Of a stretch of 64,000 bases of DNA, positions 1 to 53,266 are shown in pieces. The stretch is from assembly GCA_025594325.1 (NCBI GenBank), contig JANHCV010000011.1, positions 1,178,001 through 1,242,000 of the forward strand, in the 5' to 3' direction. The position numbers and the translations under genes were made by a program. Every line of letters starts with the position of its first letter. The first letter of the stretch is position 1. The notes below the pieces were generated by a model, which saw only the letters and a program-made list of their open reading frames with translations, had not been told where the DNA came from and made no database searches. The DNA comes from Blastocladiella emersonii ATCC 22665 (lineage: Eukaryota; Fungi; Blastocladiomycota).

Positions 1-2042
1 GGACACAGGGGTCCGACTTGGAGAGGCGCTTGAGACCCTCAACGAGCTTGGGCAGGTCGTTGGCGTTCTTGACCTCGACGGCGACCTCGACGACGGGCGA
101 GACCGAGAACTTCATGACCTTGAGGTTGTGGGCCGTCTCCGAGGTGGAGATGGTGCCCGACTTGAGCAGGAACTGGTCGACGCCGACGAGGCCGACGATG
201 TTACCGGCGGGGCAGTCGTCGATCGACTCGACCTTGCCGCCCATCATGAGCACGGTGCGCTGGACCGACTTGACGAACAGGTCCTCCTTCTTGCCCGGGA
301 TGTAGTTGGGGCCCTGGATGCGGACCTTCTGGCCACCGCGGATCGTGCCCGAGAAGACACGGCCGAAGGCGTAGAAGCGGCCCTTGTCCGACGTGGGAAC
401 CATCTTGGAGACGTAGAGCATGAGAGGGCCGTTGGGGTTGCACTCGCGGATACCGACAGCGGACTCGTCGTCGAGGGGACCCTCGTACAGGGTCTCGACA
501 CGGTAGCGCTGGGCCGTGGCGGGCGAGGGCAGGTGGATGACGATCATCTCGAGGAGGGCCTCACCGGCGGGGAGGAACTTCTTCATGACGGTCTTGAGCA
601 GGGGCTTGCCAGTGAGCTCCTTCTCGTCGTTCTTGAGGGGGATATCGAGCTTGGCGAGCATCGACGTGATCTGGTCGGCCTTAAAGTTCATGATGGCGTC
701 GAACACCTTGAAGATGGGGTCGAGCACGAACATGTTGAAGGCGCGGTCGAGCGGCTTGCCGGCGGCGTCCGTCGACTTGGACGTCCACTTCTTGGTGGCG
801 GGGTTGAAGTAGTTCTCGCCCCAGAGCTTGTTCATCATCTTGTTCTTGTCGACACCGAACTTCTTGGCGTAGCGGGCCGCGAACTGGCGCAGGGTGAAGG
901 CCCAGCCGTGGAGACCGGAGCCGAAGGCAACGGTGCCGCGGTCGGGGTAGACCTGGACGTCGCCGAGGGTGGCGTCCATGTACGTCGAGATGATGACGTT
1001 GACGTTCTCGATGACGCGCTGGAAGTTCTGGTACAGGTCCTCCTTCTCCATCTGGAGCTCGAGCAGGGCGCGGTCGACCTTGTTGATGACGAGGACGGGC
1101 TTGATGCGCTCGGTGAGGGCCTGGCGCAGGACGGTCTCGGTCTGCACGCAAACACCCTCGATGGTGTCGACGACGACGAGGGCGCCGTCGGTGACACGGA
1201 GGGCGGCCGTGACCTCGGACGAGAAGTCGACGTGTCCGGGCGAGTCGATGAGGTTGATCAGGAACTCGTTGCCGTCGGTCTTCTGCTTGATGTCGGGGAG
1301 GTCCTCCTCGGCGAGCTGGAAGTACATGGAGATGGCGGTCGACTTGATGGTGATACCGCGCTCCTGCTCGTCCTGGCGCGTGTCGGTGGCACGGGCCTCG
1401 CCGGCCTTACCGGTCGAGATGATACCGGCCTTGGACAGCAGCGAGTCGGTCAGGGTCGACTTGCCGTGGTCGACGTGGGCGATGACCGACATGTTGCGGA
1501 TGTTGGACGTCTTGTCCATCAGCTGACGGATCTGGTCTGCAGGGTCACACGCGCAACGGGTTCATCGTCAGTCGTCCGTTTCTTTTTGGGGAACCGTCGA
1601 GGACGGCGGTTTGGCCGTCTAGAGCAGCGTTTTCGTCGGGCGGCGAGGGTTGGGCGAGACGGCGGCGGACGAGAGACCACGGGTCGGCGAGCGGATGGTC
1701 TAGCACGCCGCGACGGCCGCGCCCGAGGCCACAACGACACGGCGACCAGCGACGCCACCGACGGCGTTTCCGCAGGCGGCGACGGCGCTGACGTTGGTGG
1801 CGACGGCGCTGACGTTGGTGGCGAGTAGCGTCGCGGCGTCGTCGTCGTCCGCGCGGCGAGTGCACAGGACTTCGGGTTGCGGAAGTCGTCACGGCGAGCC
1901 ATCCGCGTGGCCAGCCGTCCGTCCGGCCGGTCCGTTCGTCGGTCCGGTTTTTGGACCGCCACTCGTCCGTTTCTCGACGAAAAACGCTTCTTTTCGGCCA
2001 GAACGCCCGGGGAAGCAGCGTACCGATCGTGAAGTTGACCAT
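1..2042 (-). CDS. EEF2: Translation elongation factor 2 (eEF2), 5' part. Exon 1 2042-2024, intron 2023-1537, exon 2 from 1536 running off the window edge
   Basis: Spliced translation [46 protein letters not shown]...[15 protein letters not shown]...[15 protein letters not shown]; GTPase G1 and G3 motifs; GTACGC donor, ACTGAC branch and CTGCAG acceptor keep the frame. Confidence 0.98.
1778..1824. repeat. 21-bp tandem duplication (GGCGACGGCGCTGACGTTGGT x2 plus partial) inside eEF2 intron 1
   Basis: Read directly at 1778-1798 and 1799-1819. Confidence 0.9.
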
Positions 2043-3061
2043 CTTGACGGCGTTTTCCTTTTAAACGAGATGGGGGTGTCGATAAAAGGTGGGTGCTCGA
2101 AGAGAAGGAGCAGACCTTGGCGGTGGCCCCGCCTTCTTGAGCTGGCGGCCACCTCGCGCCTCGCACCCGCCGAACCCCCCAACTGGACGCCACTCGCCGT
2201 CAGCCACTCGCCGCCCGCTGCTGGCTTCTCGTTGGTCAGTCAGTTCGTCACTGGCCACTCACTGCTGCCCTCGCTCGCGCTGCTGCCCTCGCTCGGCGGC
2301 GGACGGCCCGGCCCTTCCCGCTCCTCTCCCTGCCCGCGCCGCGCCGCGCCGAGCCGAGCGTCTCCCATCCGTTGCCCGACCCGCCCGCGCGATGCTCGCC
2401 GGCCCTGATCTCCACAGACGAAGCTCATGCACACTGACGGCAGCAACGTGCCGAGTCAGAGTCGAGTCAGCACTCCTACCACGCGTCGCCCTCGTAAGTG
2501 AGTCGCGAGGGACTCGAATGGACCTGCCGGCCGAGGCGTGTTGCGTCGCGTCGCGTCGCGTCGCGAACCGAGCGAGCATCTGGTCGCGGACCACGCAGGT
2601 CGACGCCGGCCAGCTCGCCGCGGCGCGAAGTGAGGGACTCGACTCGCGGCGGTGTACGGGCGCGACGACGGGCTCGCAGCGGCTGGGTCGTCGCGTCGTG
2701 TGGCGGGGGAGGTCGGGGGATAAGCGGTCGTATCGTGACGACATAAGGGAGTATCGGTAGCGGACGAGGCCACCGGGACCGCGAGCTTGGGCGAGGTGCA
2801 GCGACACGACCTGCCTCGCGCGTGGTCAGAGTGCTTAGGGATGGGTGCTCTCATGAATAGCCAGTGTCAGCCAAGTGTACCGCACGCGGGCTCAGCGGCG
2901 GCGCGAACAGGGCCGCTGGTAATAGACGCGTCCTCCGCGGCACACGAGTCCATGGTGGACCGTCACTGCGATTTTGGGCGGATCTTGACGCTGTGCCTTG
3001 ACGCGTTGCGCCATCAGGTGTCGGATCACTCAGCCGCTCTCGCCCAAACCTCGCTGTCCAA
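1889..3061. repeat. Copy A of a 1173-bp inverted duplication (eEF2 upstream region, exon 1 and 5' part of intron 1)
   Basis: Reverse complement of 13755-14927. ORF-track proteins are identical on opposite strands (1889..2182-/14634..14927+, 2089..2760+/14056..14727-, 2259..2807-/14009..14557+); coordinate sum is constant at 16816. Confidence 0.97.
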
Positions 3062-6000
3062 GCTCGCCCACACCCTTGAAACCATCGATTCCCCTCCCGC
3101 TCATGGAAACGTGTCGAACCCATTTTGGAGTGGAAGCAGAAGTGGTAGCTACATCAGCTGGCCTCGCTCGCGGCCGCAGAAGAAGCGCGTCAGCTGGTCG
3201 TCATGGACCTTGTCGCGTGCCCACCCAGCACACTGGCGCTCGTCAGATAAGTCTTGGTCGCCGTGCTGAGCGGCAAGCTAGCATGCTGGCGAAAAGTGAA
3301 GTGAAGTGGAACCAGATCGGCGTGAATATAAAAGAGCTTGACGCGCGCGCCACAGCCTTGTTGACCACGGCGTCGTTGATGCTGCTCGCGAAGCGGGCGG
3401 TCGTCGTCGCCGGATTGCCGCCGTTTCGACTCGAAGCACAATGGACCAGGAGTCAGCTCTACTAGTGCAGCGCAGCGGGCGAGCGAGGCGTGAGTGATCG
3501 ATCATCGGCTAATGAGCGGGAGTTGCGGCGGCCCAGGAAAACACGTTCCATGATGGACGACGACCTGCTGCGCCGCCGCCGACACGACCACGACAACGAC
3601 TTGGACTCGAGCGTGCGGGTGCGTAGCTCGAGGATGAGAGTCGTTGGTTCGTGTCGCGCGCTCCGAGCCCAATCATGTCGCGCGCGGGTCATGAGCCATA
3701 GTCGATGCCCTCCGCGGCCATGGCCACAGCGCGAGGCCACGGACACGTGCTGCTGGGCTGGACGATGGCGAACGCGAATGCGTGGCGAGGGCGTCGAGGT
3801 TGCCGAAGCAGCAGATGGGCGACCACGAGGAAGATGATCCGGACACGCTTGAGGAAGAGAGGAGGAGCGACGGTGGCGATACGAATCGATCGACAAACTT
3901 TGTTGAGCGTGCAGCGCGCGCGTCAGTCCACCGTATTTGCAGCAACCACTGCACCCGGAAGAGATGGAGCGTACCATCACGGAATCGAGCCGTGATTGTC
4001 GCGCAGCACCGCTGGTCGCGGCGGCAGAGTCGAAGATGGAGGCGAGTACGGGCGCGCGGAGGAAGAAGGACTCGAAGCCGGTCGAGTCGGCTACACGGTG
4101 GATGCAGTCGCGCGGCTCGGTCAGTATGAGCCGCCGTGCGGATGGTCCCGTCTCGTCTCGGCCACGCGTACCGATATCATCGAGTTGCGGTGTGGTCCGC
4201 CCGTGGCCGCGGTTCTCCTTGAGCTTGACCTCGCTCGTCTCGGTCGGCGCGTACATGACTCGGAGCGGTGGTGGAGATGCAGCCGAGGCCGTCCGTGTAC
4301 GAGTACGAGGCGAGCAGCTGGCCGCGAGCGAGAGATCAACGACGCGGTAGCTCGTTGTTAAGCGGTACAGCGCGCGCGTAAACACGAGTCGGGTCGATGC
4401 GAGCGAGGAGGAGAAGTAGCGCGACTTCCATCAACTACTGGTCGCGGAGAACAGATGTCAGCGATCACGGACTCGGCGGACGGACACGATCGGAAGAAGA
4501 GGGCGCCACGTTCCAGGTCTGCTGCTCGAGTGCTGTTGCTGAGTGTCGGTCGACTCGTCGGTGCCTTGGGTCGTCGGCTCATGGATTGTGAACTCGCCGT
4601 GCAGCCCGTTGTCGTTCACGCTGATCTCGATCGTGCAGCTCTTGGCCGTCGCCGCTGCGCGAAGCGAAGCCGAGGTTGTCGAAGGCCGCGAATAGTAGCT
4701 CTTGAGCTCGCAGGCGGGATGCTCGCTCGGGTGCGTGCCGTAGTAGTCGTTGGAGTAGTCGTCGCTGCTGTTGTCACGCTCCGACGGACCTCGTCTGGCC
4801 GTGTTCCGTTCGGGAGATTTCAGTCCTCTACATTCGAACGACGCGTCAGTTTCCAGCAACGACGCGGTGGCAAAGGATCCGGAGCGTGCCTCCGCAGTAG
4901 TAGCGGTAGCACTGTCCACTGGTGCAGCGGCGGCGGACGCGCACACGGCAACGTCGGCGGTGCGCGATGATGCTGACCTGGATCGACTTGACGCGCTAGC
5001 GCGAGGCGGAATCACGATGATGCGCGCACACGCAATGGCCATGGACATGACGGCAGCAGCGGAAGCGCTTGCAAGAGAGAGACGCGCAAGTACTTGGTCA
5101 AGGCTCACACAATGGGCTTCTAGCGCAGAGCGCAGGGCGAGCGAGTGGTGCGTGAGTGAGTGATCGGCCAACTTCGCACGAGTGAGAGATCCAGCGCGAC
5201 ACGTCCCAGGTTGACGTTGACCTGCGACCCCGCTGTGTGACGCTCGCCGCCGACTTGAGCTGGTCGTCCACATCGCGGCGCGTTGTGTCGTGGCTGGCCG
5301 GAGCTTGGAGGTCGACGCGCGCGTGGTGTGTTGTCGCGGAAGTCGATGAAGTCGATGAAGTCGACTCGTAGAAGGCGAGTCGCAGTTGTTGAGAGTACCG
5401 TATTGAGTCAGCTGGGCCGAGGACCGCTGCTGACGACCGAGATGGCGGCGGCCGTTGCAGTTCCAGAACGACCGACGCCGAGGCGCCCTGCCGCTTGAAG
5501 TCGTCGCAGGGGGGGAAGTTGAGCTTCGACGACGGCGACGAGTACGTGAGGCTCAGCCCGGCTCGACCCAGCTCGACCCGGCGCCGCGCGTAGTATCGTT
5601 CGGTTGAGAAGTCGTAGCGTCGTACTCGCCCTAGCCATGAGCGACGCGTCAGTCACGATTCTGTGGGTGGCAGCAAGCGCTTTGCGCGTACCATACGCTA
5701 CCCCTCGACTCGGCTTGAACTCGGTGCGCGTGGTCTCGGGCATGGACGACGACGATGGCCATCTTGGACTGCTGCTCCTTGCTGGACGACCCGCGGCCCA
5801 AGCGAGTCTTCATGACCACGACCATGGCCATGGCCATGGCCGCGCGCTCGATCTCGAACAGCGAGTGAGCTCTCGAGCGGGTTTGCGTCGAGCTTCTCGG
5901 TGAGCGCGAGATTCTTGAAGATGAGCGAGAGCTGGCCCACGCCACGCCCAATGCTGCCGCTGCCCTTGAACGCGCACGTGATGGTTCCTGGTCGTGGTGT

Positions 6001-8949
6001 GTTGTCGCCGAGGAGCGCCAGCGCCTCGATCGCGGAACACGGCGAGGATCTGGAGAAATACAGCAACAGAATGAGGTGAGTGATCATCGTTCATACTTAC
6101 GTGGCGACCGACGCGAATCGACACGCGTACCATCCATGCAGGGCGATGTACGCCGCCCGCCCGCCGACTTGGACTCGCGCCGCACCGCCGCACGGTCGGT
6201 AGAGCGTCGAGCGTCGAGCGTCATGCCGTATGTTGAACGTGAGCGTCGAGCGCGGCCGACTTGAGGCGTCGTTGTAGCGTGCTGCCGTAGTAGTCGAGCG
6301 ACTCGGTCCCTCGAACTTGCGCGCACAACCCCCGCCGCGGGCAGCCGCGCAACGGTTGCTACAGGATCGGACGTGGGTAAGCGACGAGTGCGTGGCGGTC
6401 ACTACGAGACTATGAAAACTCGTACCGTCGCTCTGCTTGAGAGGCAAACGTCGAGAGGAAGCGGCCTTGCTGCGAGAACTGGGCGAGAAACACGAGGAAC
6501 GGCACATGGCCGCGCGACAGCCCGTCATCGCCGCAGCCAGCACGCCCGAATGCGAGCTTGAAGTCGTCGCTGCTACGCGGAAGCCGCCGACCCAGGTCAG
6601 TGACAAGCCGAGCGATGGCTGCCGTGAAAACGCGCGTACCGTCACCGAGTCGTTGCTGCCGCATCGGGATCGACGCGATCCGGTTCGAGCTTGACCTGCA
6701 TCTTGACGCATCGATCAACGACGGCGACGCGTTTCGATGACAGCGCCACGAGTCGGAGCAAGTACCAGCCTGACGTTGAGGAGGAGGAGCGTGGATGCCT
6801 GCCTGGAACGATGCGCGCGTCGCGTCGCGTCAGCAGATGCCGCGAAGCGGCCCTTTTCGTACCAGATGTAGCAAAAGCGCCGCCGAACATGATCGAGGAC
6901 CCGCGGAGGCGAAGAGTTGGATGCGGAGGGCGCGTGGCGACGCTCGGTCGGTATACACAGGTGGATGCGTGGGTCAGCATCGACGGCGACCCACGGACTT
7001 GACCGTCCCCGTACCGGAGCCAGGATAGAGCGGATGGTGCTGCACGGCGGTGTGAAGGGAGTGCCGCCACCCCGCGCGTCTCGTGCGACGAGTGGTTGTG
7101 GTGCACGGAGCCCTGGACGGTTCGTGGCGGCGTCAATGTAACGGGCTGCTCGCGCGCGTCGACACGCGCGTACCTCGGTACGGGCGGCGCGTGCGTCGAG
7201 TAGTTGCGGGTGGTATCGCAGCGGATCGCGCGCGGAAGGGGAATAGTTGATGGCATCGCAAGGAGTAGACGTGGTGTGACGAGAGAAAAAGTTTGCTCTA
7301 CGCGTCGGTGCGACGCGTTTCTGGATACAAAGCGCGAGTGGCGCGTCTCCCCGACGCGTCTCTCACGGCTGCGGGACAATTTCGCGTGCACACCTGACCC
7401 CGCTGACCGCGAAGCGCTGCGATTTTCGCCTCGCGTCCGCCCGAGAACCGATTATCGAGGTTCTACCAAGTCTCTTGCGTCGGCACTTGCGCTCAGCACC
7501 TGCACCAGCGCTGCGAGAGCACTCCCAAGCTTCTGCGTCTCAACTCGAGCGCGTTGCGCCACAGCCGCACGCGACGTGGCGTCACCGCACTTCTCACGAA
7601 CGCTTCCGCTGGCGGCCGCTTCTCCCCCTCGACGGCGCGTTCACAGGCGTCCCGCGGTATCATGGACCGCACTTAACCTCCGCGACTGTTTGCAACGGTG
7701 CTCGTGCGGCCGCCTTGGCAGGCTCCCGAGCGCGCAGCGGGCAGGACTCGGATTGTCGGTGTCGCGGGCACGGCAGCCCCGATCGGCACCCATGAGATTG
7801 ATAGACATTGTCCACGACTCGCTGGGGCAGTCATACGGGAGAGGATCCGGCTTCGAGTAGACTCCGCGGGTCTGCTCCAGCATGGCATGCTGGAGCACGC
7901 GCGCGTCGGTCAGGCTGATCGACGCGCGCCTTCGCCACGGCTTGCTGCACTCGCACTGCAGCTTCGCTCGCATCCATATCACATCTCCATCTTCTTCGTG
8001 GCGCTCATGACTGAGTACGGTTGCCCGAGTCGTGTCGCAGCAACACATCCGCCTCAGCCCGTTGCCAACCACTCGCCTCGCCGTCCCGCAGCGTCGCCGG
8101 TGGGTCTGAGTGCCGCCTTCCATTTTGCTTCATGTGGTCGTGCGAGAAAGCGTTGACCGGCGAGCGCTTCCCGATGTCCAGCGACGCGTTCCGATGCAAC
8201 AGACACGCCGTTGCCCGCTTCGGCACGCGTCGTCTCCGTGCGAACACCAACCGACCGCGTCGGCTCACGCGATCGTTGCCGACTTCTTCCTCGTGGGTCG
8301 CTCGCGAAACGCGCCCGAGAGTGGCGAGACGTGCCCCTCACGATGTGAGTTGTTGGTGAGCCTGGCGTCATGAACGCCGCGTCGAGGCGGCCGCCGCCCT
8401 CTCCCTCTGACGCCACTCCGCCGCGAACGCACCGAATGAAACGCAACCGTTACTTGCTACATTCTGTCCCCCGGGTGTCCTTCGCGCCCTGGTCGCCGCA
8501 AAATGGCCGGATCCGGCGCTGCCGGCGCTGTGTGTGTCGCACGGCCGCACCGTGCTCCGCCTGAGCTCCGCGGCGTCGATCATTACACGCACCGTGCCGG
8601 CAGGCCCTCGCACATCTGTATACCAGGATTTAAGGTCTAGACCGCTTCCGCGGTCGCCCCGCTGCACTTACGCGTGCGTGTGAGCCAAGGCCCTGCTCGT
8701 CCGCGTCGCTGTATCGGTCTGGGGCATGGGCTTCAGCAGTCCACCGGTGCCTTTCGTGTGGACCGAATACGCCCTTGACCATTGCTACGACGCGTTGGCG
8801 GCGCGAGTGAACTGTGCGAGACATGGCTGCGAGACATCCCGTGCCTGTCACTCGCGTCGCGGAGCGCGATCAAGCTTCTTGCGCTTCACCCTGCTCTGAG
8901 TGGAGAACGGACGACGGTGTATCGCATACAATTATCCCCACCCACCTTC

Positions 8950-10160
8950 TCAGATATAAAACTCCGGACTTTCAAGCCGCCCGCGCTGCTTGACCCTGCC
9001 CGGCGCCCCGCCCGCGGGCGGGAACAGGGGGTACTTGTACGCGGCGAGCAGGAGGTCCTTAATCGCGGGCCACGCCATAACCTGGTGCGTGCGCTCGACG
9101 GTGCCTGACAGGTACTCCTTGCGCATCAGCGGGAACCGGATCAGCCGCACCAGCTCCGTCATGACCACCTGGTGCTCGGCCGTCGCCGCCTGCGACCACT
9201 GCAGCGGCCACACGCCACTGGCGCCGCCGGTGGTGCTGCGGGGAGAGCCGAGCGGGTCGAACGGCGACTTGAGCGGCGACGTGGCGACCGACACGAGCGA
9301 CGCGGGCGGCGGGTGGTGGGTGAAGGCGGTGGTGGTGGTCAGCGGGCTCGTGTTGCTGCGGCCCGGCGACGCGAACCGACCGCCGCTGCCGCCGAACCCA
9401 CTCGACCCCGTGGACCCGAGCCCGAGCGTCGAGTCGCCTACACTGCCCGCAGCGCTCCCACCCGTCCCCGTCCCCGCCGCGGGCGTACGCGCGGGCGCCG
9501 AGTGCATGCGGTCGTGCGGGAACTGGCCCGCCGCCGATGCCGTCGCGGCACCGGGACCCGCCGCCATCTGCGCGGCCGGCGGCGGGCGCAGCGGGTCGTC
9601 GGAATCGAGCGTTGGGTCGTCCGCGAGGAACGCGTCGAGCGCCGACTCGGCCGCAAGAGCTGACAGCGACCCTGCCTGTGCACCCGCGTCTTCCTGCGTC
9701 TCGCCAGAGCCGCCGTCCACATTGAGCTCGGTCAGCACGCGCTGCTTCGGCGACCCCGCGCGCTCGACGTCAACCTCGAGCGACGGGAGGTTGGGCTACG
9801 GGAACACAGGCGAGTGGACTTCGCCGTGCTGCGTGCCTGTAGCGGCGGTCGGTAATGGACCCCATGGCGATACAGGCGCCGCGCTGAACCCGGCCGCGGC
9901 GCCGCTCGTCTCGTGGACGAGTGTGCCGGGGATTACAAGCGGGCGCGTGCGCGCAGCACGCGCCCTGGTACTGCCGCCTCCGTCTTCGAAGCGAGCGGGG
10001 ATCCGCTCAGCGAAGAAGTTGATCACGGGCTCCCCGGACTCGACGTTAAGGCGGGCCGCCAACAGGACGGAGCGCATCAGGTCGGGCGTAATCCCGGCGA
10101 TACCCTCCTTGACCTGCTGCGCGGCGAGCAGGACGACCGGTTGTACAGGAAGTCGCCGCC
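8950..10160 (-). pseudogene. Probable decayed gene with a BACK-domain-like C-terminal segment (BTB/BACK family-like)
   Basis: ELVRLIRFPLMRKEYLSGTVERTHQVMAWPAIKDLLLAAYKY resembles the end of BACK domains. The frame continues through an in-frame TAG at 9796-9798 (nonsense or acceptor), and the downstream exon candidate (8700-8900) has further stops. Confidence 0.45.
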
Positions 10161-10718
10161 GCCGGCGGTCGTGGTGACAGACGCGTGGCGCGAGCGCGCG
10201 AGCTGTGCGGGCGACCTGACCACGTTCTCGCCGTCGGCGCCGCCGCCCGCAAAGGCGAGTAGCGACAAGGAGGCGCGACTCACGGACGAATAGGGTGCAA
10301 AGGCGGTCAAAGTGACACGCGAGAAACGCCAACGCACGCTGTCCCGTCGTGACGAAGCCGAGTTGGCAGCAGCCGTCGCGACTGCCGCTTGGACAAAGCA
10401 CGAGGGGTAACTTCGGAGCATGATGCGAGTTGCGACAATTGCTCACTGAAAACGCTTCCAAGAGCGGGATAAGATCGATGGTTTTTAGGGTATGAGTGAG
10501 CTTAGGGCCCGTTTGGTTCAGATCAGGTGGATCAGCTGAAAAAGTTGCCACGTTTCACCTCACCCCCGTTCATCTCAGCGGCCGTGCGAACCAAACGCCC
10601 CGCTGGATGAACCCCCCCCCCCCCCGCAATAAAATCTTTCCCACCTCTTTGCAGCCGCACTTATTGCAACGAATCAACACCTAACCTCACGCATCGTGTT
10701 CTCGAGCCCTCAAACAAC

Positions 10719-12036
10719 ATGGGCAAGGGATACAACCGCAAGCTGCGCGGCCTAATGCTCACAGCCGCCCTCGCTCTCCTGCGACGTCTCGCTGCTCGCA
10801 ACGAGCGCCGCTCCTGGGAGCCTATCCGCACGTCCACGCTTTCCGGCGAGTCGTGGGTTTAAGAGCTGCTGACGTGCAACAGCGAAACGCGTTTTTCGGA
10901 AATCGCCCGTATGCCCCGCGAGACCTTCAAGGCCATCTGCCGCCTGTTCCGCGACCGTGGCCTTCTCGCCGACGGCCGCGAGCTGTCCGTCGAGGCGCGC
11001 TTCATGGTTTTTCTTGTCATGGCCGGCGAGGGCAGCACCAACCGCAACCTCAGGGAGCGGTTCCAAATCTCTGGCGAGACCGCGTCCAGGGTTCTGAAGC
11101 AAGTGCTCGACGCTCTGTACCGCCTGATGCCCGAGTTCATTGTCCAGCCGTCCGATTCTACGCCCGTGCATGAGCGCATCGCCCACGACCCGAAATACGC
11201 TCCGTTCCAGAACGCGGTCGGCGCGCTTGACGGAACGCACATCCCGTTTGTTGTGCCCGCCAAGCTTCACGACTCGTTCCGAAACCGCAAGGGGACCATA
11301 TACTCAAATGTCCTCGCTGCCTGCGACTTTGACTTGAACTTCACCTACGTTCTCGCAGGGTGGGAGGGCAAGGCGCACGACTCGCGCGTGCTCTCGGACG
11401 CCTTCGCCCGTGGGTTCAAGATCCCCGCCGGCCGCTTCTACCTCGCCGACGGCGGCTACGCAAACCGCACGTCCATCATCGTGCCCTTCAGCGGTACCCG
11501 CTATCATCTTCGCGAGTTTGCCCGCGGCAAGGATGGGTACGTTCTCACTGCCATGACCATCACGTTGGCGCCATCTCATCTGCTTCACCAACGTACGTAG
11601 AGTTAAGAACCGCGAAGAGCTTTTCAATCTGCGTCACGCGTCGCTCCGCAACTCCATTGAGCATATCTTTGGCGTGCTCAAGAAGCGGTTCCGCGTCCTC
11701 TCGATTGGCGCGGCCTACCCAATCAAGACTCAAGTCAAGCTTGTGTACGCGCTCTGCACGCTGCACAACATGATCAACAAGTGGAACCAAGGCGGCGACG
11801 CCTTCTTTCGCGACGCCGAGACGGAGCTCCGGCGCGCGCGGGACGCGGCGCGTGAGGCGCCAGTGCGTGGGCGCGAGCCCCTGGACGACGAGAACGAGGA
11901 GGACGACGAGGCCGCTGTCCTCGAGGCCTCGCTGGACGGAGCTCGTCAGCGCGGTATCTCGCTTCGGAACCGCGTCGCAAATGTTCTTTGGACCGAGTAC
12001 AGGCGCGTCATGGCCGCTCGTGGGACCCGTCTTTGA
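10719..12036 (+). pseudogene. Harbinger DDE transposase (DDE_Tnp_4-like). Exons 10719-11536 and 11601-12036; in-frame TAA at codon 48 (10860-10862); open from Met65 (10911)
   Basis: Motifs GALDGTHI, GWEGKAHDSRV, YLADGGY, and after splicing ELFNLRHASLRNSIEHIFGVLKKRF; GTACGT...TAG intron of 64 nt restores the frame. Confidence 0.93.
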
Positions 12037-12349
12037 AGGCGCGAAATAATTGTTGTACCCGCATGCATGCTGTAATATACTGATTTGTCAAGTACTATAA
12101 CGTTAGATAAGCGATTCCAGATGATTTGACGCGTCGCTGAGGTCAGAACGCATCGGTGGAGACGCGTCGATCAATCACGTGACGTGCGAGACACTTTGAG
12201 AACCACGCGTTTCTCAACGAGTCGCGTCATTTTCGAGCGAAGGGTAACGATTGAAGATACGATGGACACAAAGCCAGATGTATTGGACACAAATGGGCGA
12301 GAACAAGGCCAGGAAGCAACGCGAGGGGAGGGGGACATGTGCGAGAGAG

Positions 12350-13479
12350 CTACTGAATGAAAAACTCGAGGACGCGCTTGCGCTTCGATTCGGACACGGC
12401 CATGACGCGAAGCGCTTGATCCTCGGTCAGGCGGGTGGCGACGTCGATCTGGTACTCTTCATTGTCATTGTACGCGTCCTGGACCCATTCAAGTGCGGCG
12501 GTCAGAACGGGCTTGGAGTCGGCGGTCGCGACGCTCTGGAACACCTCCTTGATGTCCATGAGGAATTCCGAGTCCGAGAGGCGACGCGAGCTGCTGTCCG
12601 AAGTGCGGCTGCGCTTGCTGGCGGGGGCCGCGTCGTCTTGACCATCAACACCTTCCACGTCACCAGACTCCTTGCCGTCCTGCTCGAGGTGCGAGTACTT
12701 GCCGGTGGCGGTCGAGCTGCCCCACAGCATGTTGGCCTTCTTGTAGTACGGGAAGGGCTTGCAGCCCGCAGTCAGCTCCTCCTTGAGCTCTGCCTACAAT
12801 TGAAGCAGGCCAGGCGCTGTTAGCTCGCCGCGAGTTGACGCGTAACGATATTGAACAAACGTACCGAGAGATCGTTCCAGAACTCCTCTGGCACGTCGAC
12901 CGTGCACTCACCCTCATTCCAGGTGCAGCCGTTGCCCGAGTACGACAGAAGCCGTTTTACGGCGCGAAAACAAGTGCGAAGCTGGAGCCGAACGCTGACG
13001 TTGTTAGCGCTACGGTTGACGCGTGTCCGCAAGACAAAGCGTACGTATGTCACGCGGTTCTTGACCTGCTCCGCCGTAAACTGCATGTTGAACTCGTCCG
13101 ACAGGGCCTGGGCAATCGACACACGGTGCTGGGCCTTGAGCGTGTTGCTGTCGCCGAGCACGCCGTCGTCAGCGAGGTTGCAGAAGTGGTCGAGGAGGAA
13201 GTTGGTCGACGCGGAGCAGAAGGTGGCCTTGCCGCCGCTGGCCTTGCCGCTGCTGGCCTTGCTGCCACTGGCCTTGCGCTTGCTTGGCTTGGCGATGGTC
13301 ACGGGCGGCAGCGGGTTGGTCGGCGTGACAGCAGCGTTGCCATCGCTCCCAGCAGCGTCGTCATCTGCATCCTCGTCGCTATCGGCGGGCGGCGGCGGGA
13401 TTTCGGGCACGTTCTTGACGATCTCCTCGATGGACATGGCCGTACGGCCAGCGCGCTTTTTGCTTGACGGGGGAGCCAT
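12350..13479 (-). CDS. Harbinger-associated Myb/SANT-like DNA-binding protein. Exons 13479-13045, 12981-12865, 12793-12350
   Basis: IAQALSDEFNMQFTAEQVKNR...VKRLLSYSGNGCTWNE...VDVPEEFW...KPFPYYKKANMLWGSSTATG pattern typical of PIF/Harbinger ORF2; two GTACG...YAG introns in phase 0. Confidence 0.9.
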
Positions 13480-13754
13480 TCTTTTCGGCTTTGAGGGAGG
13501 ACGGGGGAGAGAGAGCGAGTTACTTTGGAGGAAAACGGCGTTTATATAGGCCGGGGAGCACAGTCTGAAGGTTTCGGGGGCGAGCAGACGGGCGATTCAG
13601 CGACGAGGGTTCCATTCAGCTCACCCGGGGGTTGAACCAAACGCCGCGATGAACGCGACGGGGTGAAAATGCCACGTTTCAGCTGGGTGAACACCGGACC
13701 GTGTAAAATCGATTGATCCACCTGATTCACCCCGGAACCAAACGGGCCCTTAGT

Positions 13755-14927
13755 TTGGACAGCGAGGTTTGGGCGAGAGCGGCTGAGTGATCCGACACCT
13801 GATGGCGCAACGCGTCAAGGCACAGCGTCAAGATCCGCCCAAAATCGCAGTGACGGTCCACCATGGACTCGTGTGCCGCGGAGGACGCGTCTATTACCAG
13901 CGGCCCTGTTCGCGCCGCCGCTGAGCCCGCGTGCGGTACACTTGGCTGACACTGGCTATTCATGAGAGCACCCATCCCTAAGCACTCTGACCACGCGCGA
14001 GGCAGGTCGTGTCGCTGCACCTCGCCCAAGCTCGCGGTCCCGGTGGCCTCGTCCGCTACCGATACTCCCTTATGTCGTCACGATACGACCGCTTATCCCC
14101 CGACCTCCCCCGCCACACGACGCGACGACCCAGCCGCTGCGAGCCCGTCGTCGCGCCCGTACACCGCCGCGAGTCGAGTCCCTCACTTCGCGCCGCGGCG
14201 AGCTGGCCGGCGTCGACCTGCGTGGTCCGCGACCAGATGCTCGCTCGGTTCGCGACGCGACGCGACGCGACGCAACACGCCTCGGCCGGCAGGTCCATTC
14301 GAGTCCCTCGCGACTCACTTACGAGGGCGACGCGTGGTAGGAGTGCTGACTCGACTCTGACTCGGCACGTTGCTGCCGTCAGTGTGCATGAGCTTCGTCT
14401 GTGGAGATCAGGGCCGGCGAGCATCGCGCGGGCGGGTCGGGCAACGGATGGGAGACGCTCGGCTCGGCGCGGCGCGGCGCGGGCAGGGAGAGGAGCGGGA
14501 AGGGCCGGGCCGTCCGCCGCCGAGCGAGGGCAGCAGCGCGAGCGAGGGCAGCAGTGAGTGGCCAGTGACGAACTGACTGACCAACGAGAAGCCAGCAGCG
14601 GGCGGCGAGTGGCTGACGGCGAGTGGCGTCCAGTTGGGGGGTTCGGCGGGTGCGAGGCGCGAGGTGGCCGCCAGCTCAAGAAGGCGGGGCCACCGCCAAG
14701 GTCTGCTCCTTCTCTTCGAGCACCCACCTTTTATCGACACCCCCATCTCGTTTAAAAGGAAAACGCCGTCAAGATGGTCAACTTCACGATCGGTACGCTG
14801 CTTCCCCGGGCGTTCTGGCCGAAAAGAAGCGTTTTTCGTCGAGAAACGGACGAGTGGCGGTCCAAAAACCGGACCGACGAACGGACCGGCCGGACGGACG
14901 GCTGGCCACGCGGATGGCTCGCCGTGA
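13755..14927. repeat. Copy B of the 1173-bp inverted duplication. Carries a second eEF2 promoter region, exon 1 (ATG 14774-14792, MVNFTI) and splice donor (14793) on the + strand
   Basis: Reverse complement of 1889-3061; AAGATGGTCAACTTCACGATCG/GTACGC read at 14771-14798; no eEF2 exon 2 follows. Confidence 0.97.
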
Positions 14928-15197
14928 TGCGATTATAATCACACGACTTGTGATATTCTTAAGCCTTTCGTACCTTGAAGCAACAGGGGAGGCTAACATG
15001 GAACGAAAGCTCACGCTATTGACGCGTTGCGCCACTCACGTGTTGGGTGAAATGATCGGCTCCCGCGATCCGAACGCGCTCGCCGCGTGCCTGCGCGTTA
15101 CGCTTTCGCTCTGAGGCCTGATGCATCGAATGTATTGAGTCCGCTCTCTATGCAACCTCTTTATCTCTGCTTGCTTTGAGCATATCGACGGTTTCAC

Positions 15198-17285
15198 ATG
15201 AATCCATCGGCAGCCAACAGTAACGCCACGCCTTCCGCCCGCGACTTGATCGCCGCTCTACACGTGCAGATCGAGCGTGACGACTGGGACACGGGCGGTG
15301 CACGCGAAATCGCTGCGATCTCGGCGACGATCCGAGCGACGTTTCCAGACATTGATGTCGCTGCGCGAGAAGCGCCGTATCGTCATCGGCTGCTGAGAAT
15401 GGAACAACATGCTGTCCAACTTATCCCGCCGCCGCCGCCGCCGCTACCTGCTTTGCCAGCTGCACCTGCCCCGTTGCCGCAGCTTGTCAATCCGTCCAAC
15501 ATTGCACCATCGCGGCTGCCTGGATCTCCCGCCGCATCTGCGCCGTCACCAGTTTCGTCGTCTTCAGCCGTTGTCAATGCGGCTCAGCCCGTCCATCCCA
15601 CGCGCCCGACGCCGCGCAAACAGCGCGCAGCCGCGCACCGCGAGACGGTTCAGCAGAAGCGCGAGGAGCGCGAGCAGCAGGACAACGCGAGACAGATCCA
15701 AATGCACGGCCGACCTGCCGAGGGCCTCGCCATCTACGTGCCCTTCGACCCATCGGGCAACAACTCGCAGGCCGCCGTGCTCAAGTGCGTCAAAACCAAC
15801 GTGCTCGATGCTGCTTTCGCCGCCCTCTTCGAGACGCTTGCTTCGAGCGGTGCCCTCTACATCGTCGACGGGCTATCTCAGCGTGCCAACGAGGACGCGC
15901 GCGTCGCTGACTTGCGCTCGGCCATGGTCGCGCTATCGAGTGATGGTTTGCTCGACCCTCCTCACGCACACGCCCAGTGGGCGCAGCGCGTCGGTATGTT
16001 CGCGCACCTGTACACAAACCGGCTCTTTGACGTCGCTCGCGCCATGGCGCTCGTGTCCATGGACAGTATCACTCTTGATACGCTCAGCCACGGTGTTCCT
16101 TACGCGCCCCTCTCACCTCCTCCGTTACGATAGGCGATCTCACCGTGCCGAACGGACTCTCGCTCTCGACCAAGTACGACCTCGACCAGGTCTTCGCCCA
16201 GATCGCCAAGTGGGACCGACTCGCGGTCCGCTTCGACCACGACCCGTCCAAGGTGCCGCCGTATCGGCCCATTCTTGCATTCGCGACGCCGCGCTGCCCG
16301 GCCGGGATTTCGTGTCCGCAAAACGATGCTGGTCGCTTCGAGTTTGACGGGATTTACTTTGACGGGCAGCCGTACGGCACGCCGGCGAGCTTTCTGGCCA
16401 TGATCCTCACGTCGTCGGGTGCCCGCGACATTATCGAGTCAAACGTGCATGACGCGGGCCTCCCGTACTCGGCGCGCGTCAAGATCGGCATCAACCGTCT
16501 CGTTGCCCTGCTTACTCCGAGCACCGACGCTTTCGGGCCGTACGAGAACGTGGCCTCGCTTCGCGGTCTAGAGCCCGAGTCGGATGCCGATCTTGAGTGC
16601 GTCGCGTAGCGCCGTACATCAGCAGTCGCCGTACTGACCGACTATCTCTTGGTATAGGATCGAGCGCCGGTCGGCGCGAGTGCACGCGTGTGTCGTGGTC
16701 GTCGCCTACTCGCACAAGCACCGCCCCGAGACAAAGCCGCGCTCCGAGTACGCTCGCGCTGCCGCAGCGGCCGATGCGCAGATGGGCCCCAAGACGGTTG
16801 GCGAGCAGCTCGACGCGGCCGTGTTCCACGCGCAGGCCGACTACCGGTCGCACCGGTGCACGATCAAGAACCAGCAGGCGAAGCGTCGCAACAAGCGCGC
16901 CGCGCACGCCGCAGCGACGCTCAACGTCGCGCAGCCCGGTCTCGACAAGCGCGAGCTCCGCCGTCACCTCCGCGAGGACACGGACGTCGGGTACGCGGTG
17001 CTGCAGTGGTGCGGGTTGAGCTGGTCCGTGTACAAGTCGCACTCGAGCGAGCGCACGGTGTACACGGCGTGGGATAAGTCGGAGCCACGCATCGCGTTCG
17101 CGTCGACTGATCTCTTCTCGGGCCAGTTCCCCTCGCTCGACGACCTGTTCAAGGCGATCGGGTCCACGCGCATCCGGGTTACGGATATCATCTACTCGCT
17201 GCCCGTTACGCCCGAGTGCTCATCGCTTCCCGTCGAGATTGACTATCCGATCCAGCTTCCCGTCCAGGCGCCCGCTGCAGAGTGA
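15198..17285 (+). CDS. Orphan 3-exon protein (~650 aa) of unknown function
   Basis: Three consecutive ORFs join in frame. Intron 1 ends at TAG 16133 (donor 16066 or 16093, both phase 1). Intron 2 is 16597-16657 (GTGCGT, TACTGAC branch, TAG). Pro-rich N-terminus; no family recognised. Confidence 0.7.
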
Positions 17286-22965: not shown

Positions 22966-24238
22966 AGGCCTGATCGCGTTTCGGATCACGACGCGCCACG
23001 TGTCACCGTTGCCATGCGAAACTCAGCCACACCCGCACATGCGCGATGCGAGACGCGTTTGTCTCGCACGCCACGTGCTTTGCTCTGCCGCCAAAATCTC
23101 GTTGAAGGGACTTGATATTGGGCAAACTAACGCTTCGCTCACTGATTTCTTGCCCACGGCGAGCGACAGGACACGTTCACGATTCACGAAGCCGTTCAGC
23201 AGGGTCAGAGGATTCACGTTGGGAGGCACGTTTCCTCGCTCAATCTCAACCCCTTGAGAAAGTTATTAAATCCTAGTCGATGCAGCGTGTTCTCGAAGCC
23301 TCGGCCTTACCCTCAATGTACAGAAGTCGATTGCGGGAGCGTTTCGCTCACTCAATCCTGTCGAGTGCTCCTCTTGGCCGACTCCCCTTGCAACAGCCCT
23401 GCTCACTCGAGGCGCGCACGAGCAATTGATCCGTGGTGCTGGAAATTCCGCTCAGTGAGGTTGCGGGGGCGTCGTGCAGGGAAAGTCGCCGCTAAAGCGT
23501 GTCGCGTTGAGTCAAAACCAGACCCGGGTCGGACTGCTGCTGTTGCTGGAGCCGCCGCGACCGCACAGTAGTTTGTCAAGGTCGTAGGGTCCGGATCACG
23601 GCGACAGAAGGACGACGCGGAGAGCTGGTTCCGAGCAACGCTACACGAGCAACTCTTCGCTGCTCGCTCTCGCTAGACACGCTGTAGTCTCAAGGGCGAG
23701 ACAAACCGGCGCCTTGCGCAATTATTCCGCACGCAATGAAGTGACTTCGAGTACGGTTACCGTTCGGTACGGCAGAAAGCTCGTTGGAATCGCGTGGACG
23801 TGGCCAAGTGCTGCGCTGTCACACACCGCTCAGCACACGGACCATTAGGCAATTGTAAGAAGTAACACGCTGGGCAGAACCGTCCACCTCGCACCGTGAT
23901 GTGCCGCATCGCTCGCATGGAGTGAACAGCGTCGGCTCGGTTCACGCGACTGCAGAATAGGTGCAAGCTCCTTCCGATGTTCAGTTGCATGCAGTTTCGC
24001 ATCGAGACGCGCCCTGTGTGGGGTGCCACTGACGTAGTGGAGGAGCGAGTCGTGTTCAAACGTTGAGCACATAAGGGTCGAGGCGCTCACGATCGATTAT
24101 TCGCTGTTGAGAAGGGTTCGTTGCTCTCGCGAGGCGAGCAGGCGCGAGACGCGTCGATCAATCATGTGACCGCGTTGAGACACCTTTTTGCCCGTCGCGT
24201 CGTGATCCGACGTCGTGATCCGAAGCGCGATCAGGCCT
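22966..24238. repeat. Inverted repeat pair (22966-22993 / 24211-24238, 27 of 28 identical), with weaker homology outward; possible degraded non-autonomous DNA transposon
   Basis: AGGCCTGATCGCGTTTCGGATCACGACG versus CGTCGTGATCCGAAGCGCGATCAGGCCT; ORF track shows MIRNAIRP (-) and MIRSAIRP (+). Confidence 0.7.
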
Positions 24239-52456: not shown

Positions 52457-53266
52457 GGTCGTGATGTGTACATCCGCGATACAACTCGGAATTTGGGTGA
52501 CCATCGGGACTGAGCACAACTGCTCCCAACGCCGCGGCTTCCATGGGAGTGCTTGGCGTCTCGCTTGTGTGGCGACCTCGTCTTTGAGCGAGCGGCCGTC
52601 GTACTTCAACCCGTGCCGCGTTGCTTCAGCAGCACACCCTCGCCTCGCATTTCACGCTTCGCAGCGCAGCGTTCGGGCCATCTGAGGGGTACTACCGGCT
52701 TCAGTCCCCCCTGCTCGGCTTCCACAACCATCGCTCGTTCTCGAACTGCTGGCCGATGGGCCAGAGTCAACCTCAAGGACCTCCCATCGCCCCCAAACCG
52801 TCAACATCGACGTGGATCGATGCCACCGAATCTCGCGTTGCGCCTGGCCAACATGAGGATGGAGAGGCGCGCCTGGACAGGACGAGCGGATCCGGCAATC
52901 AAGCTGTGCTCGCAAACCAGGAAGTGCCAGCAGACTCATCAATCGACGTGACCACGAAGGGCGAGTGAGCACTCCGGCGGGGGAAACGGGTAAAGGATCA
53001 TAGTAGAGAGAATTTGTGTATATTATTGTACTTTAAAACTTTCGAAGGGATGAGATTGCTCCCGCATAAGACCTGAAGCGACGCGTGCGCCGCGGCTCGG
53101 CCAGCCGCGTGTCTCGCACATCACGTGTTTGATCGGCGCGTCTCACGCTGCCGAGCTGCGGCTCGTGGTCTCCCGCTCAAGCTGATCCAAGCCTCTCTGA
53201 GGTATCAAATCACCGGCCATCTCATGATGAACACAAAGAACTCTTCTATATCGACCAAATCGCGTC

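Follow-up and report, generated by a model that had tools for sequence, protein, structure and literature searches.

The arms of primate Y-chromosome palindromes are kept identical by arm-to-arm gene conversion. In rice, the Ping/Pong/mPing group of transposons is characterized by a TTA/TAA target, two genes and a preference for DNA upstream of genes. A third described system is the fold-back of single-stranded DNA in budding yeast, where inverted repeats can pair with each other across as much as 30 kb and despite a divergence of as much as 25% (Ait Saada et al., 2023; PMC10164571). Inverted insertions templated by such fold-backs have, in the same organism, one end made by polymerase delta and the other by NHEJ or alt-EJ (Yu et al., 2024; PMC11724301).

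Features comparable to those of all three systems are seen upstream of the gene for elongation factor eEF2 in Blastocladiella emersonii ATCC 22665, an early-diverging fungus without earlier work on DNA repair. The window, that is the whole stretch of 64,000 nt that was analysed, covers positions 1,178,001-1,242,000 of the forward strand of contig JANHCV010000011.1 (GCA_025594325.1), and coordinates below are positions within it. The locus consists of three layers, in which a transposon occupies the seam where an inverted repeat, old and short, meets a 1.17-kb copy without a single mismatch, and provides a clean natural rearrangement with both junctions readable at base resolution. The rearrangement is real and of a fairly ordinary kind.

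Arms, inner seam and distal border

The eEF2 gene is located on the minus strand at the start of the window. Exon 2 (1-1536), identified by its translation with the Pfam domains GTP_EFTU (1.6e-53), EFTU_D2 and EFG_III, is partial and runs off the window; upstream follow the 487-nt intron 1 (1537-2023), with a GTACGC donor after ATCG and a CAG acceptor before ACCAGATCCG, and the coding part of exon 1 (2024-2042), MVNFTI plus 1 nt with the ATG at 2042. In a self-comparison, 1889-3061 and 13755-14927 are exact reverse complements, 1173 nt without gap or mismatch, located on one contig 10.7 kb apart; a repeat finder sets the arms at 1889-3064 and 13752-14927, 3 nt further across a single mismatch at 13754. 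Arm A (1889-3061), with the original promoter, 5' UTR, exon 1 and intron start, is the true eEF2 5' end because it runs on into the real gene. Arm B (13755-14927, plus strand) is the inverted duplicate and contains approximately 1 kb of the upstream region, followed by the ATG at 14774 with the 19 coding nt of exon 1 (14774-14792) and by 135 nt from the start of intron 1 (2023-1889 in arm A). A chance match is rejected, as is the dispersed high-copy repeat that the sequence-only reading of this DNA had named as a possible refutation, because the segment is the sole repeat of at least 80 bp in the window and its contig depth is 1.2-1.7x that of the single-copy flanks. Logan unitigs stop exactly at 13755 and at 14927.

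Adjoining arm A lies an older short repeat, R (3060-3112), which is 79% identical to the reverse complement of R' (10452-10504), its diverged, AT-enriched partner that forms the left flank of the transposon. The alignment of 10452-10503 with 3060-3112, 53 nt with one 1-nt gap, has a BLAST E value of 1.4e-4 for the whole search space and a score of 55 versus a shuffle maximum of 41, and R' is positioned exactly as collinearity predicts. The two sequences, 7.3 kb apart and 21% diverged, differ at 11 of 53 positions, with G/C in R and A/T in R' at 6 of the 10 substitutions. Alignment of the flanks found no homology beyond 3112/10452, and R was not found in approximately 300 kb of other loci. Most of the spacer between the arms (3250-9878) is an old paralogue, approximately 75% identical, of a segment of JANHCV010000014.1 (blastn to locus L015, 9979-16718, reversed), and the C-terminal part of the gene H9P43_008416 (8950-10077, minus strand) lies within it. 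As the contig-14 paralogue ends at 3250/9878 without R-like ends and R is missing from those other loci, R and R' are rejected as terminal inverted repeats of a 7.4-kb transposon.

Relative to arm A, the emptied transposon site carries 5 extra nt, TTAGT, represented by the right TTA duplication plus GT (13750-13754) together with 10502-10504. Identity between the two sides falls in one step, from 1173 nt at 100% to 53 nt at 79% and then to nothing, so that the arms stand far above the adjoining part of the same duplication. The sequence-only reading had claimed an inverted copy of 1173 bp without indel that ends 2 bp outside the right TTA duplication, a diverged continuation of about 41/53 on the other flank of the transposon and 5 extra nt in the empty site. 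These claims are borne out, with the TTA at 13750-13752 and arm B from 13755, and its layered picture of an old short repeat and a letter-perfect 1.2-kb copy meeting at the insertion site was right.

The distal border is abrupt. The perfect arm is followed by a 16-nt insertion, TGCGATTATAATCACA (14928-14943), in which 10 nt form a perfect palindrome, GATTATAATC, and which matches the flank in inverted orientation over TGTGAT/ATCACA, and then by CGACTT (14944-14949), 6 further nt matching arm A (1883-1888), where all homology ends; past 14949 the best local score, 56 versus a shuffle maximum of 54, is not collinear with the duplication and similarity is not significant. R' is older than this junction, which looks much younger since the features of the filler are still perfect while R' has drifted by 21%.

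The Harbinger element and its family

The transposon at the seam is a full-length PIF/Harbinger element of 3245 bp (10505-13749, plus strand) with 15-bp terminal inverted repeats (TIRs), GGGCCCGTTTGGTTC, and the target-site duplication (TSD) TTA on both sides, the left one at 10502-10504. The exons of its transposase gene (10719-12036, plus strand, intron 11537-11600) match PF13359 (3.9e-11 and 2.3e-8) and PF04827 (4e-5), the DDE_Tnp_4/Plant_tran type. For the second, Myb/SANT-like gene (12350-13479, minus strand; NCBI H9P43_008417), PF12776 (Myb_DNA-bind_3) is found on the annotated product alone, and a Pfam scan of its single exons gave no match. The predicted DDE transposase, the Myb/SANT-like second gene and the TWA duplication with short TIRs jointly support membership in PIF/Harbinger. 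The transposase is interrupted at codon 48 by a TAA stop (10860-10862) where 16 of 16 other copies have CAA, with C at 10860, and lacking an intact transposase this copy is presumably not autonomous. Transposons are not mentioned in the genome paper of B. emersonii (PMC9730499).

Contig depth indicates a family of about 25-35 copies. The element is 98.6-99.3% identical to the 16 other full-length copies and has 5 private substitutions in 3245 bp, and four family copies show no substitution differences among themselves. TTA or TAA flanks all 17 copies, with TAA on one side and TTA on the other at L002 and L013. A strong extended target motif does not explain the site, as the TWA flanks are weakly biased and arm B holds 8 TWA sites.

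Since an intact TSD is accompanied by flanks that follow the contiguous eEF2-upstream sequence of arm A collinearly, this is a normal Harbinger insertion into an existing target composed of R', TTAGT and the copy, and not a rearrangement made by the transposon. The same two observations, together with the location of arm B outside the TIRs, exclude alternative transposition and Pack-type capture. The earlier proposal that the transposon caused the junction finds no support in these features, nor in the greater age of the repeats at the two other repeat-adjacent loci of the family that could be dated, L012 and L018, where the adjacent inverted repeats have diverged beyond what the private load of the transposon allows (Poisson P 0.0045 and 0.012). 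This excess divergence suggests that in B. emersonii the transposon comes second to the inverted repeats.

A scan of 358 kb of non-transposon DNA around the 17 copies found four inverted repeats, in all four of which the edge of an arm lies 1-53 bp away from the end of a Harbinger copy; among three repeats adjacent to the transposon, the longer the arm, the higher the identity (65 bp, 95%; 428 bp, 98.8%; 1173 bp, 100%). No flank duplication was found within 10 kb at 13 of the 16 other copies, which rejects such duplications as a general product of this family; L012 and L018 adjoin inverted repeats. Only tentatively can it be proposed that the family is mechanistically tied to inverted repeats, either by integration that prefers their edges or, less likely, by transposon ends provoking fold-back duplications. 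Edge targeting would be structure-directed, for example towards the stem-loop junctions of hairpins or cruciforms or towards replication forks stalled there. A literature search combining Harbinger, inverted duplication and transposase returned MITE/microRNA and general genomics papers alone, with nothing relevant, and to our knowledge the apparent clustering at the edges of inverted repeats has no described precedent in the PIF/Harbinger superfamily. If it holds genome-wide, edge clustering would be a new target preference for these elements.

Origin of the duplicate

The best explanation, in which we have moderate confidence, is an inverted segmental duplication made by repair, with fold-back synthesis primed on R/R', end joining at the far end and Harbinger insertion afterwards. 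We infer a break, priming on R/R' and an order of events as follows. The region upstream of eEF2 and the divergent promoter region between H9P43_008416 and _008418 would already have shared the old R/R' repeat when a break occurred to the right of R' and was resected. The R' end would then have paired in cis with R, by fold-back or strand invasion, and synthesis from its 3' end would have proceeded through the upstream region of eEF2 and exon 1 to 135-141 nt into intron 1, until the new strand was released and end joining to the other broken end left the 16-nt, templated-looking filler. At the inner edge of the new arm, the TTA within the 5-nt indel would have served as target for a separate, ordinary cut-and-paste insertion of Harbinger, most likely later, and the stop codon in the transposase would have been acquired after that.

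The abrupt distal border, the templated-looking filler and the fold-back repair described in yeast (PMC10164571; PMC11724301) favour this reading. An inverted copy of nearby sequence of the same chromosome is combined with a far end that carries filler, as a fold-back demands, and one homology-primed end plus one end-joined end is the pattern seen at the two borders. Break repair templated through the old 53-bp repeat, as the sequence-only reading had offered, fits border and filler and remains one of two mechanisms.

Several observations weaken fold-back synthesis. Priming from R' predicts a seamless joint, yet TTAGT sits there; the 53-nt, 79% repeat abuts the presumed priming junction with 5 unmatched nt plus the transposon in between, and to account for the extra nucleotides it must be assumed that the old repeat extended a few nt beyond an indel that was itself old. 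At 53 nt, R/R' also falls far short of the length of the Alu repeats used in the yeast experiments. Landing of the transposon 2 nt from the seam is improbable for approximately 30 copies over approximately 150,000 TWA sites, and the required preference for inverted-repeat edges is deduced from three loci. Finally, the arms show 0 differences in 2346 bp where 3.6 are expected if the 5 changes of the transposon are post-insertional and the transposon came second (P 0.027), so either some of the changes already existed in a source copy outside the sample or homogenisation of the arms is under way.

Homogenisation is the core of the strongest rival, a possible though clearly less probable origin, according to which an old inverted duplication of at least 1224 bp of the eEF2 upstream region, about as old as the 75% paralogous spacer, had its arms kept identical by gene conversion (concerted evolution), while the innermost 53 bp, isolated by the 5-nt indel and later by the transposon, decayed. 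The 21% divergence of R/R' is indeed near the approximately 25% of the spacer and its contig-14 paralogue, the arms lack any difference although the adjacent transposon has private changes, and the growth of identity with arm length at the three transposon-adjacent repeats is as conversion would have it. Yet conversion should fade near the arm ends and not jump from 0/1173 to 11/53, and the distal edge shows no eroded zone, with the arms perfect up to the filler. The palindrome, the inverted match and the 6-nt match at this edge are all intact, for which the chance is estimated at approximately 2-5% if the junction is as old as R'. The transposon, with its 5 private changes against 21% divergence, is far too young to be the barrier that let the 53 nt diverge, and any such barrier must therefore predate it; the earlier idea that conversion homogenised the arms up to the transposon heterology consequently fails to account for R/R'.

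It is unlikely that the transposon acted as trigger. Harbinger would in this case have come first, inside an older diverged copy, and a break at its right end or close to it, due to an aborted excision or to a fork stalled at the bound end, would have been repaired from arm A, with the old copy replaced up to the transposon and the far end end-joined. Such an origin would agree with an identity border 2 nt from the TSD, with five private mutations in the transposon versus none between the arms, with the recent activity of the family, evident from its four copies without substitution differences, and with the proximity of all four inverted repeats in the scan to a Harbinger end. However, the joint of transposon, TTA and GT is untouched, which places the break away from the transposase cleavage site, and the end on the transposon side has no homology to arm A except a few nt. 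The repeats that predate the transposon at L012 and L018 and the 13 copies with unduplicated flanks equally speak against a trigger, which moreover requires an older long copy that is not seen.

An assembly artefact, with copy B or its connection to the transposon produced by a mis-join or by chimeric reads, is very improbable: the junction of transposon and copy B is not among the contig pieces shown, the depth of the repeat is below 2x and all runs derive from one sample, but the PacBio HiFi reads of the assembly (mean 10.5 kb, approximately 190x; PMC9730499) easily span a 1.2-kb arm plus a 3.2-kb transposon, contigs of three DNA runs start 30 nt inside arm B, cross 14927/14928 and continue, and the diverged R' beyond the transposon is expected of a real insertion into a real copy and is created by no mis-join.

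Gene context and comparison with described systems

The eEF2 promoter, start codon and splice donor now precede an orphan gene, and the annotation already fuses both: the predicted NCBI model H9P43_008418 (14774-17285, plus strand, 473 aa) takes the duplicated exon 1 of eEF2 as its first exon and joins it to the orphan gene by a 14792|15628 splice. With the orphan ORF and the gene in the spacer as queries, protein searches gave matches in GCA_025594325.1 alone, with no orthologous loci in relatives. A strong housekeeping promoter and first exon pointing into an orphan gene is a possible consequence of the duplication, at the level of annotation. eEF2 is among the most highly expressed housekeeping genes and, since the annotation already joins it to the orphan gene, the locus offers a test of whether a promoter and first exon can be captured.

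As in alternative transposition of maize Ac/Ds or capture by Pack-MULEs, host promoter DNA is duplicated beside the end of a DNA transposon, but the TSD is intact with contiguous flanks on its two sides, the TIRs do not enclose the duplicate, and the junction that defines those processes is absent. With rice Ping/Pong/mPing the element shares the DDE_Tnp_4 transposase, the Myb-like gene, short TIRs, the TWA duplication and an insertion approximately 1 kb upstream of a start codon, while it belongs to a blastocladiomycete family of about 30 copies and carries a premature stop.

The arms are identical next to a strongly diverged stretch of the same duplication, as in palindromes subject to gene conversion, but unlike primate Y palindromes they measure 1.17 kb and have an abrupt outer border with intact junction filler. 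In contrast to yeast, where local fold-back insertions are mostly 5-34 bp and events at Alu repeats give dicentric chromosomes, in B. emersonii 1.18 kb would have been copied before the chromosome was closed again internally; the putative priming repeat measures 53 nt and the joint has 5 extra nt. In common with the yeast fold-back insertions, the locus has an inverted copy in cis, a far end joined with short filler and, in the proposed reading, one end anchored at pre-existing inverted homology that, at 7.3 kb and 21%, falls inside the yeast limits of distance and divergence.

The inverted eEF2 copy and its reliability

In Blastocladiella emersonii ATCC 22665 (GCA_025594325.1, contig JANHCV010000011.1, positions 1178001-1242000), repeat finding and self-comparison by BLAST each detect the inverted arms 1889-3064 and 13752-14927, within which arm A (1889-3061) and arm B (13755-14927) match exactly over 1173 nt, gap-free and with 0 mismatches, which bears out the inverted, indel-free copy of the eEF2 promoter and exon 1 claimed by the sequence-only reading. 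Arm A is the genuine 5' end of the minus-strand gene for elongation factor 2, whose ATG at 2042 opens 19 coding nt (MVNFTI and one further base), followed by intron 1 (2023-1537) and by exon 2, which runs from 1536 off the window edge (GTP_EFTU, 1.6e-53). Arm B, oriented rightward, takes in the start codon (14774) with approximately 1 kb of sequence upstream of it and, on the other side, the splice donor and 135 nt from the beginning of the intron.

The assembly was built with PacBio HiFi reads (mean 10.5 kb; 6.4 Gb per 34 Mb) and Illumina polishing (PMC9730499), so that arm and transposon can be spanned by single reads. In Logan contigs from four DNA runs of the same sample the repeat is a unitig with ends exactly at 13755 and 14927, and in three of the four runs a contig begins 30 nt inside arm B and runs past it into 14928 onward; the contig pieces listed also cross the left transposon junction, while the junction of transposon and arm B is absent from them. 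The depth of the repeat in these contigs, an imprecise measure, is 1.2-1.7 times that of the flank, and the arm pair is the sole repeat of at least 80 bp within the 64-kb window, which is far from a dispersed high-copy repeat. That arm B or its linkage is an assembly artefact is highly improbable.

The NCBI gene H9P43_008418 (473 aa, 14774-17285) is annotated with the duplicated MVNFTI exon as its first exon, spliced (14792|15628) to an orphan gene with no homologue outside the B. emersonii genome. As the acceptor falls within a long ORF with its own ATG at 15198, this chimeric model may be no more than an ab initio prediction. A 13-mer, GACGCGTTGCGCC, with an ACGCGT core, occurs 7 times in approximately 400 kb against approximately 0.01 expected (window 3000, 13804 on the minus strand, 15021 and 17394; 16742, 19959 and 5508 of the further loci L003, L008 and L010), mostly upstream of genes, one copy preceding the ATG at 15198 by 177 bp. 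Logan contigs break at this 13-mer, which may be a promoter element.

The Harbinger element and the two seams

The complete PIF/Harbinger element at 10505-13749 has a 15-bp terminal inverted repeat (GGGCCCGTTTGGTTC), a TTA target-site duplication (10502-10504 and 13750-13752), a DDE_Tnp_4 transposase gene (10719-12036, one intron of 64 nt) and, on the opposite strand, a Myb_DNA-bind_3 gene. It is 98.6-99.3% identical to 16 further full-length copies taken from the same assembly and has five private substitutions (10814, 10860, 12555, 13342, 13564), one of which turns transposase codon 48 from CAA into the stop TAA. Contig depth gives an estimate of 25-35 copies. TTA or TAA flanks each of the 16, with unlike triplets on the two sides at L002 (TAA vs TTA) and L013 (TTA vs TAA); the left flank at L002 (approximately 9650-9688 in transposon orientation) terminates in ...GAACGGGCCC-TAA and resembles the end of another Harbinger, which points to a solo end next to this copy or to rearrangement of the insertion. 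The four copies at L002-L005 (contigs 3 and 5), of which L004 and L005 sit within direct repeats of 17.4 kb at the beginning of a contig, differ by 0-1 substitutions, so that the family has transposed, or been co-amplified with tandem units, very recently. Within the element, the poly-C tract at 10606-10618, close to the left end, varies in length and base among copies, and contigs have either lost 5 nt there or carry a C>G substitution; between the two genes (12159-12194) a stretch of 25-36 nt (…CACGTGACGTGCGAGACAC…) recurs at 24146-24170 and 53109-53144, outside any transposon copy.

At the proximal seam, the left flank of the transposon (R', 10452-10504) prolongs the homology with the sequence beside arm A (R, 3060-3112) at 79% identity with one 1-nt gap, exactly where collinearity predicts it and with an alignment score of 55 against a shuffle maximum of 41; beyond, homology ends. 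Copy B without the element and one TTA reads GAGC-TTAGT-TTGG and arm A GAGC-TTGG, the TTA of this 5-nt indel being the transposon target; both the diverged homology and the 5 extra nt had been noticed from the sequence by hand. As R' has a lower GC content (46% vs 57%) and, at 6 of the 10 substituted positions, A/T where R has G/C, R' looks, by base composition, like the older, decaying partner.

At the distal seam, 14927 is directly followed by a 16-nt insertion (TGCGATTATAATCACA) holding a perfect 10-nt palindrome and an inverted match to the flank (TGTGAT/ATCACA), then by 6 nt matching arm A 1883-1888, then by no match. Sensitive alignment of 14928-16500 with the remaining eEF2 gene gave at best a non-collinear score of 56, barely over the shuffle maximum of 54. 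These filler features are still perfect, which argues for a distal junction much younger than R'.

Origin of the copy

The best reading, to which we give about an even chance, is fold-back or templated break repair: a DNA break right of R' would have been resected, the R' end would have paired with R, 7.3 kb distant, synthesis from its 3' end would have copied 1.18 kb of the eEF2 5' region, and end joining would have captured the far end, leaving templated filler. In budding yeast, fold-back within single-stranded DNA occurs between inverted repeats separated by as much as 30 kb and differing by as much as 25% (PMC10164571), and fold-back inverted insertions arise by polymerase-delta synthesis at one end and NHEJ or alt-EJ at the other (PMC11724301). 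Against this reading, the joint with its 5 extra nt is not seamless, and the arms show 0 differences beside the five private transposon substitutions, where 3.6 would be expected (P 0.027 for zero) if the transposon was the later arrival and acquired all five at this site.

Its main rival, possible but clearly less probable, is an old inverted duplication with arms kept identical by arm-to-arm conversion and R' cut off by the indel; it accords with R and R' (21% diverged) being about as old as the spacer paralogue on contig 14 (approximately 75% identity), but leaves the sharp, uneroded distal border unexplained. This spacer segment (3250-9878), most of the 7.4 kb between arm A and the transposon, matches 9979-16718 of L015 (JANHCV010000014.1) in reverse and is an old paralogue of it; the two include the gene pair H9P43_008416 / H9P43_009347 (67% protein identity) and are otherwise nearly without annotated genes.

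An intact target-site duplication, and flanks that align collinearly with one contiguous stretch upstream of eEF2, show that the Harbinger insertion was normal and that its target already had R', TTAGT and the copy side by side. The earlier interpretation is partly supported: templated repair through the old repeat stands as the best reading, with the transposon a bystander or later arrival and not the cause. An unlikely third reading is a transposon-triggered break whose repair replaced an older copy as far as the element. Alternative transposition and fragment capture are excluded by the intact duplication, the collinear flanks and the position of the copy outside the terminal inverted repeats. 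Nor can the element, in the conversion model also proposed earlier, be the barrier that let R' diverge 21%, as it is approximately 1% from its relatives and has only five private substitutions.

Inverted repeats at Harbinger ends

Scanning 358 kb of non-transposon DNA (16 transposon-centred loci, one control locus and the window) with a single threshold set gave four inverted-repeat pairs only, in each of which the edge of one arm lies 1-53 bp from the end of a Harbinger: the window pair (1173 bp, 100%, 3 bp), a pair at L012 (428 bp, 98.8%, 33-34 bp) and two at L018 (65 bp, 95%, 1 bp; 117 bp, 92%, 53 bp). At L012 (JANHCV010000001.1; arms 10007-10434 / 14970-15397) the inverted fragment comes from a ZNFX1-like helicase gene and the transposon (10468-13721) lies in the spacer beside the arm inner edge. 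At L018 (JANHCV010000003.1; 12941-13005 / 13163-13227 and 12993-13108 / 16641-16757; transposon 9689-12940) the 65-bp pair, possibly a small foldback or MITE-like element, begins at the first base outside the Harbinger end and covers the position of the target-site duplication, which reads TTA there and TTT in the other arm. Arm divergence exceeds what the private load of the transposon allows (Poisson P 0.0045 at L012 and 0.012 at L018), so the repeat preceded the transposon at both.

In this small sample, with one locus picked for this very feature, the association hints at Harbinger insertion targeted to inverted-repeat edges, a preference which, if true, would account for the element at the seam of the eEF2 copy. 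It is the part most worth pursuing of a locus otherwise of moderate interest, which joins two known kinds of event, a putative fold-back inverted duplication and the insertion of a Harbinger.
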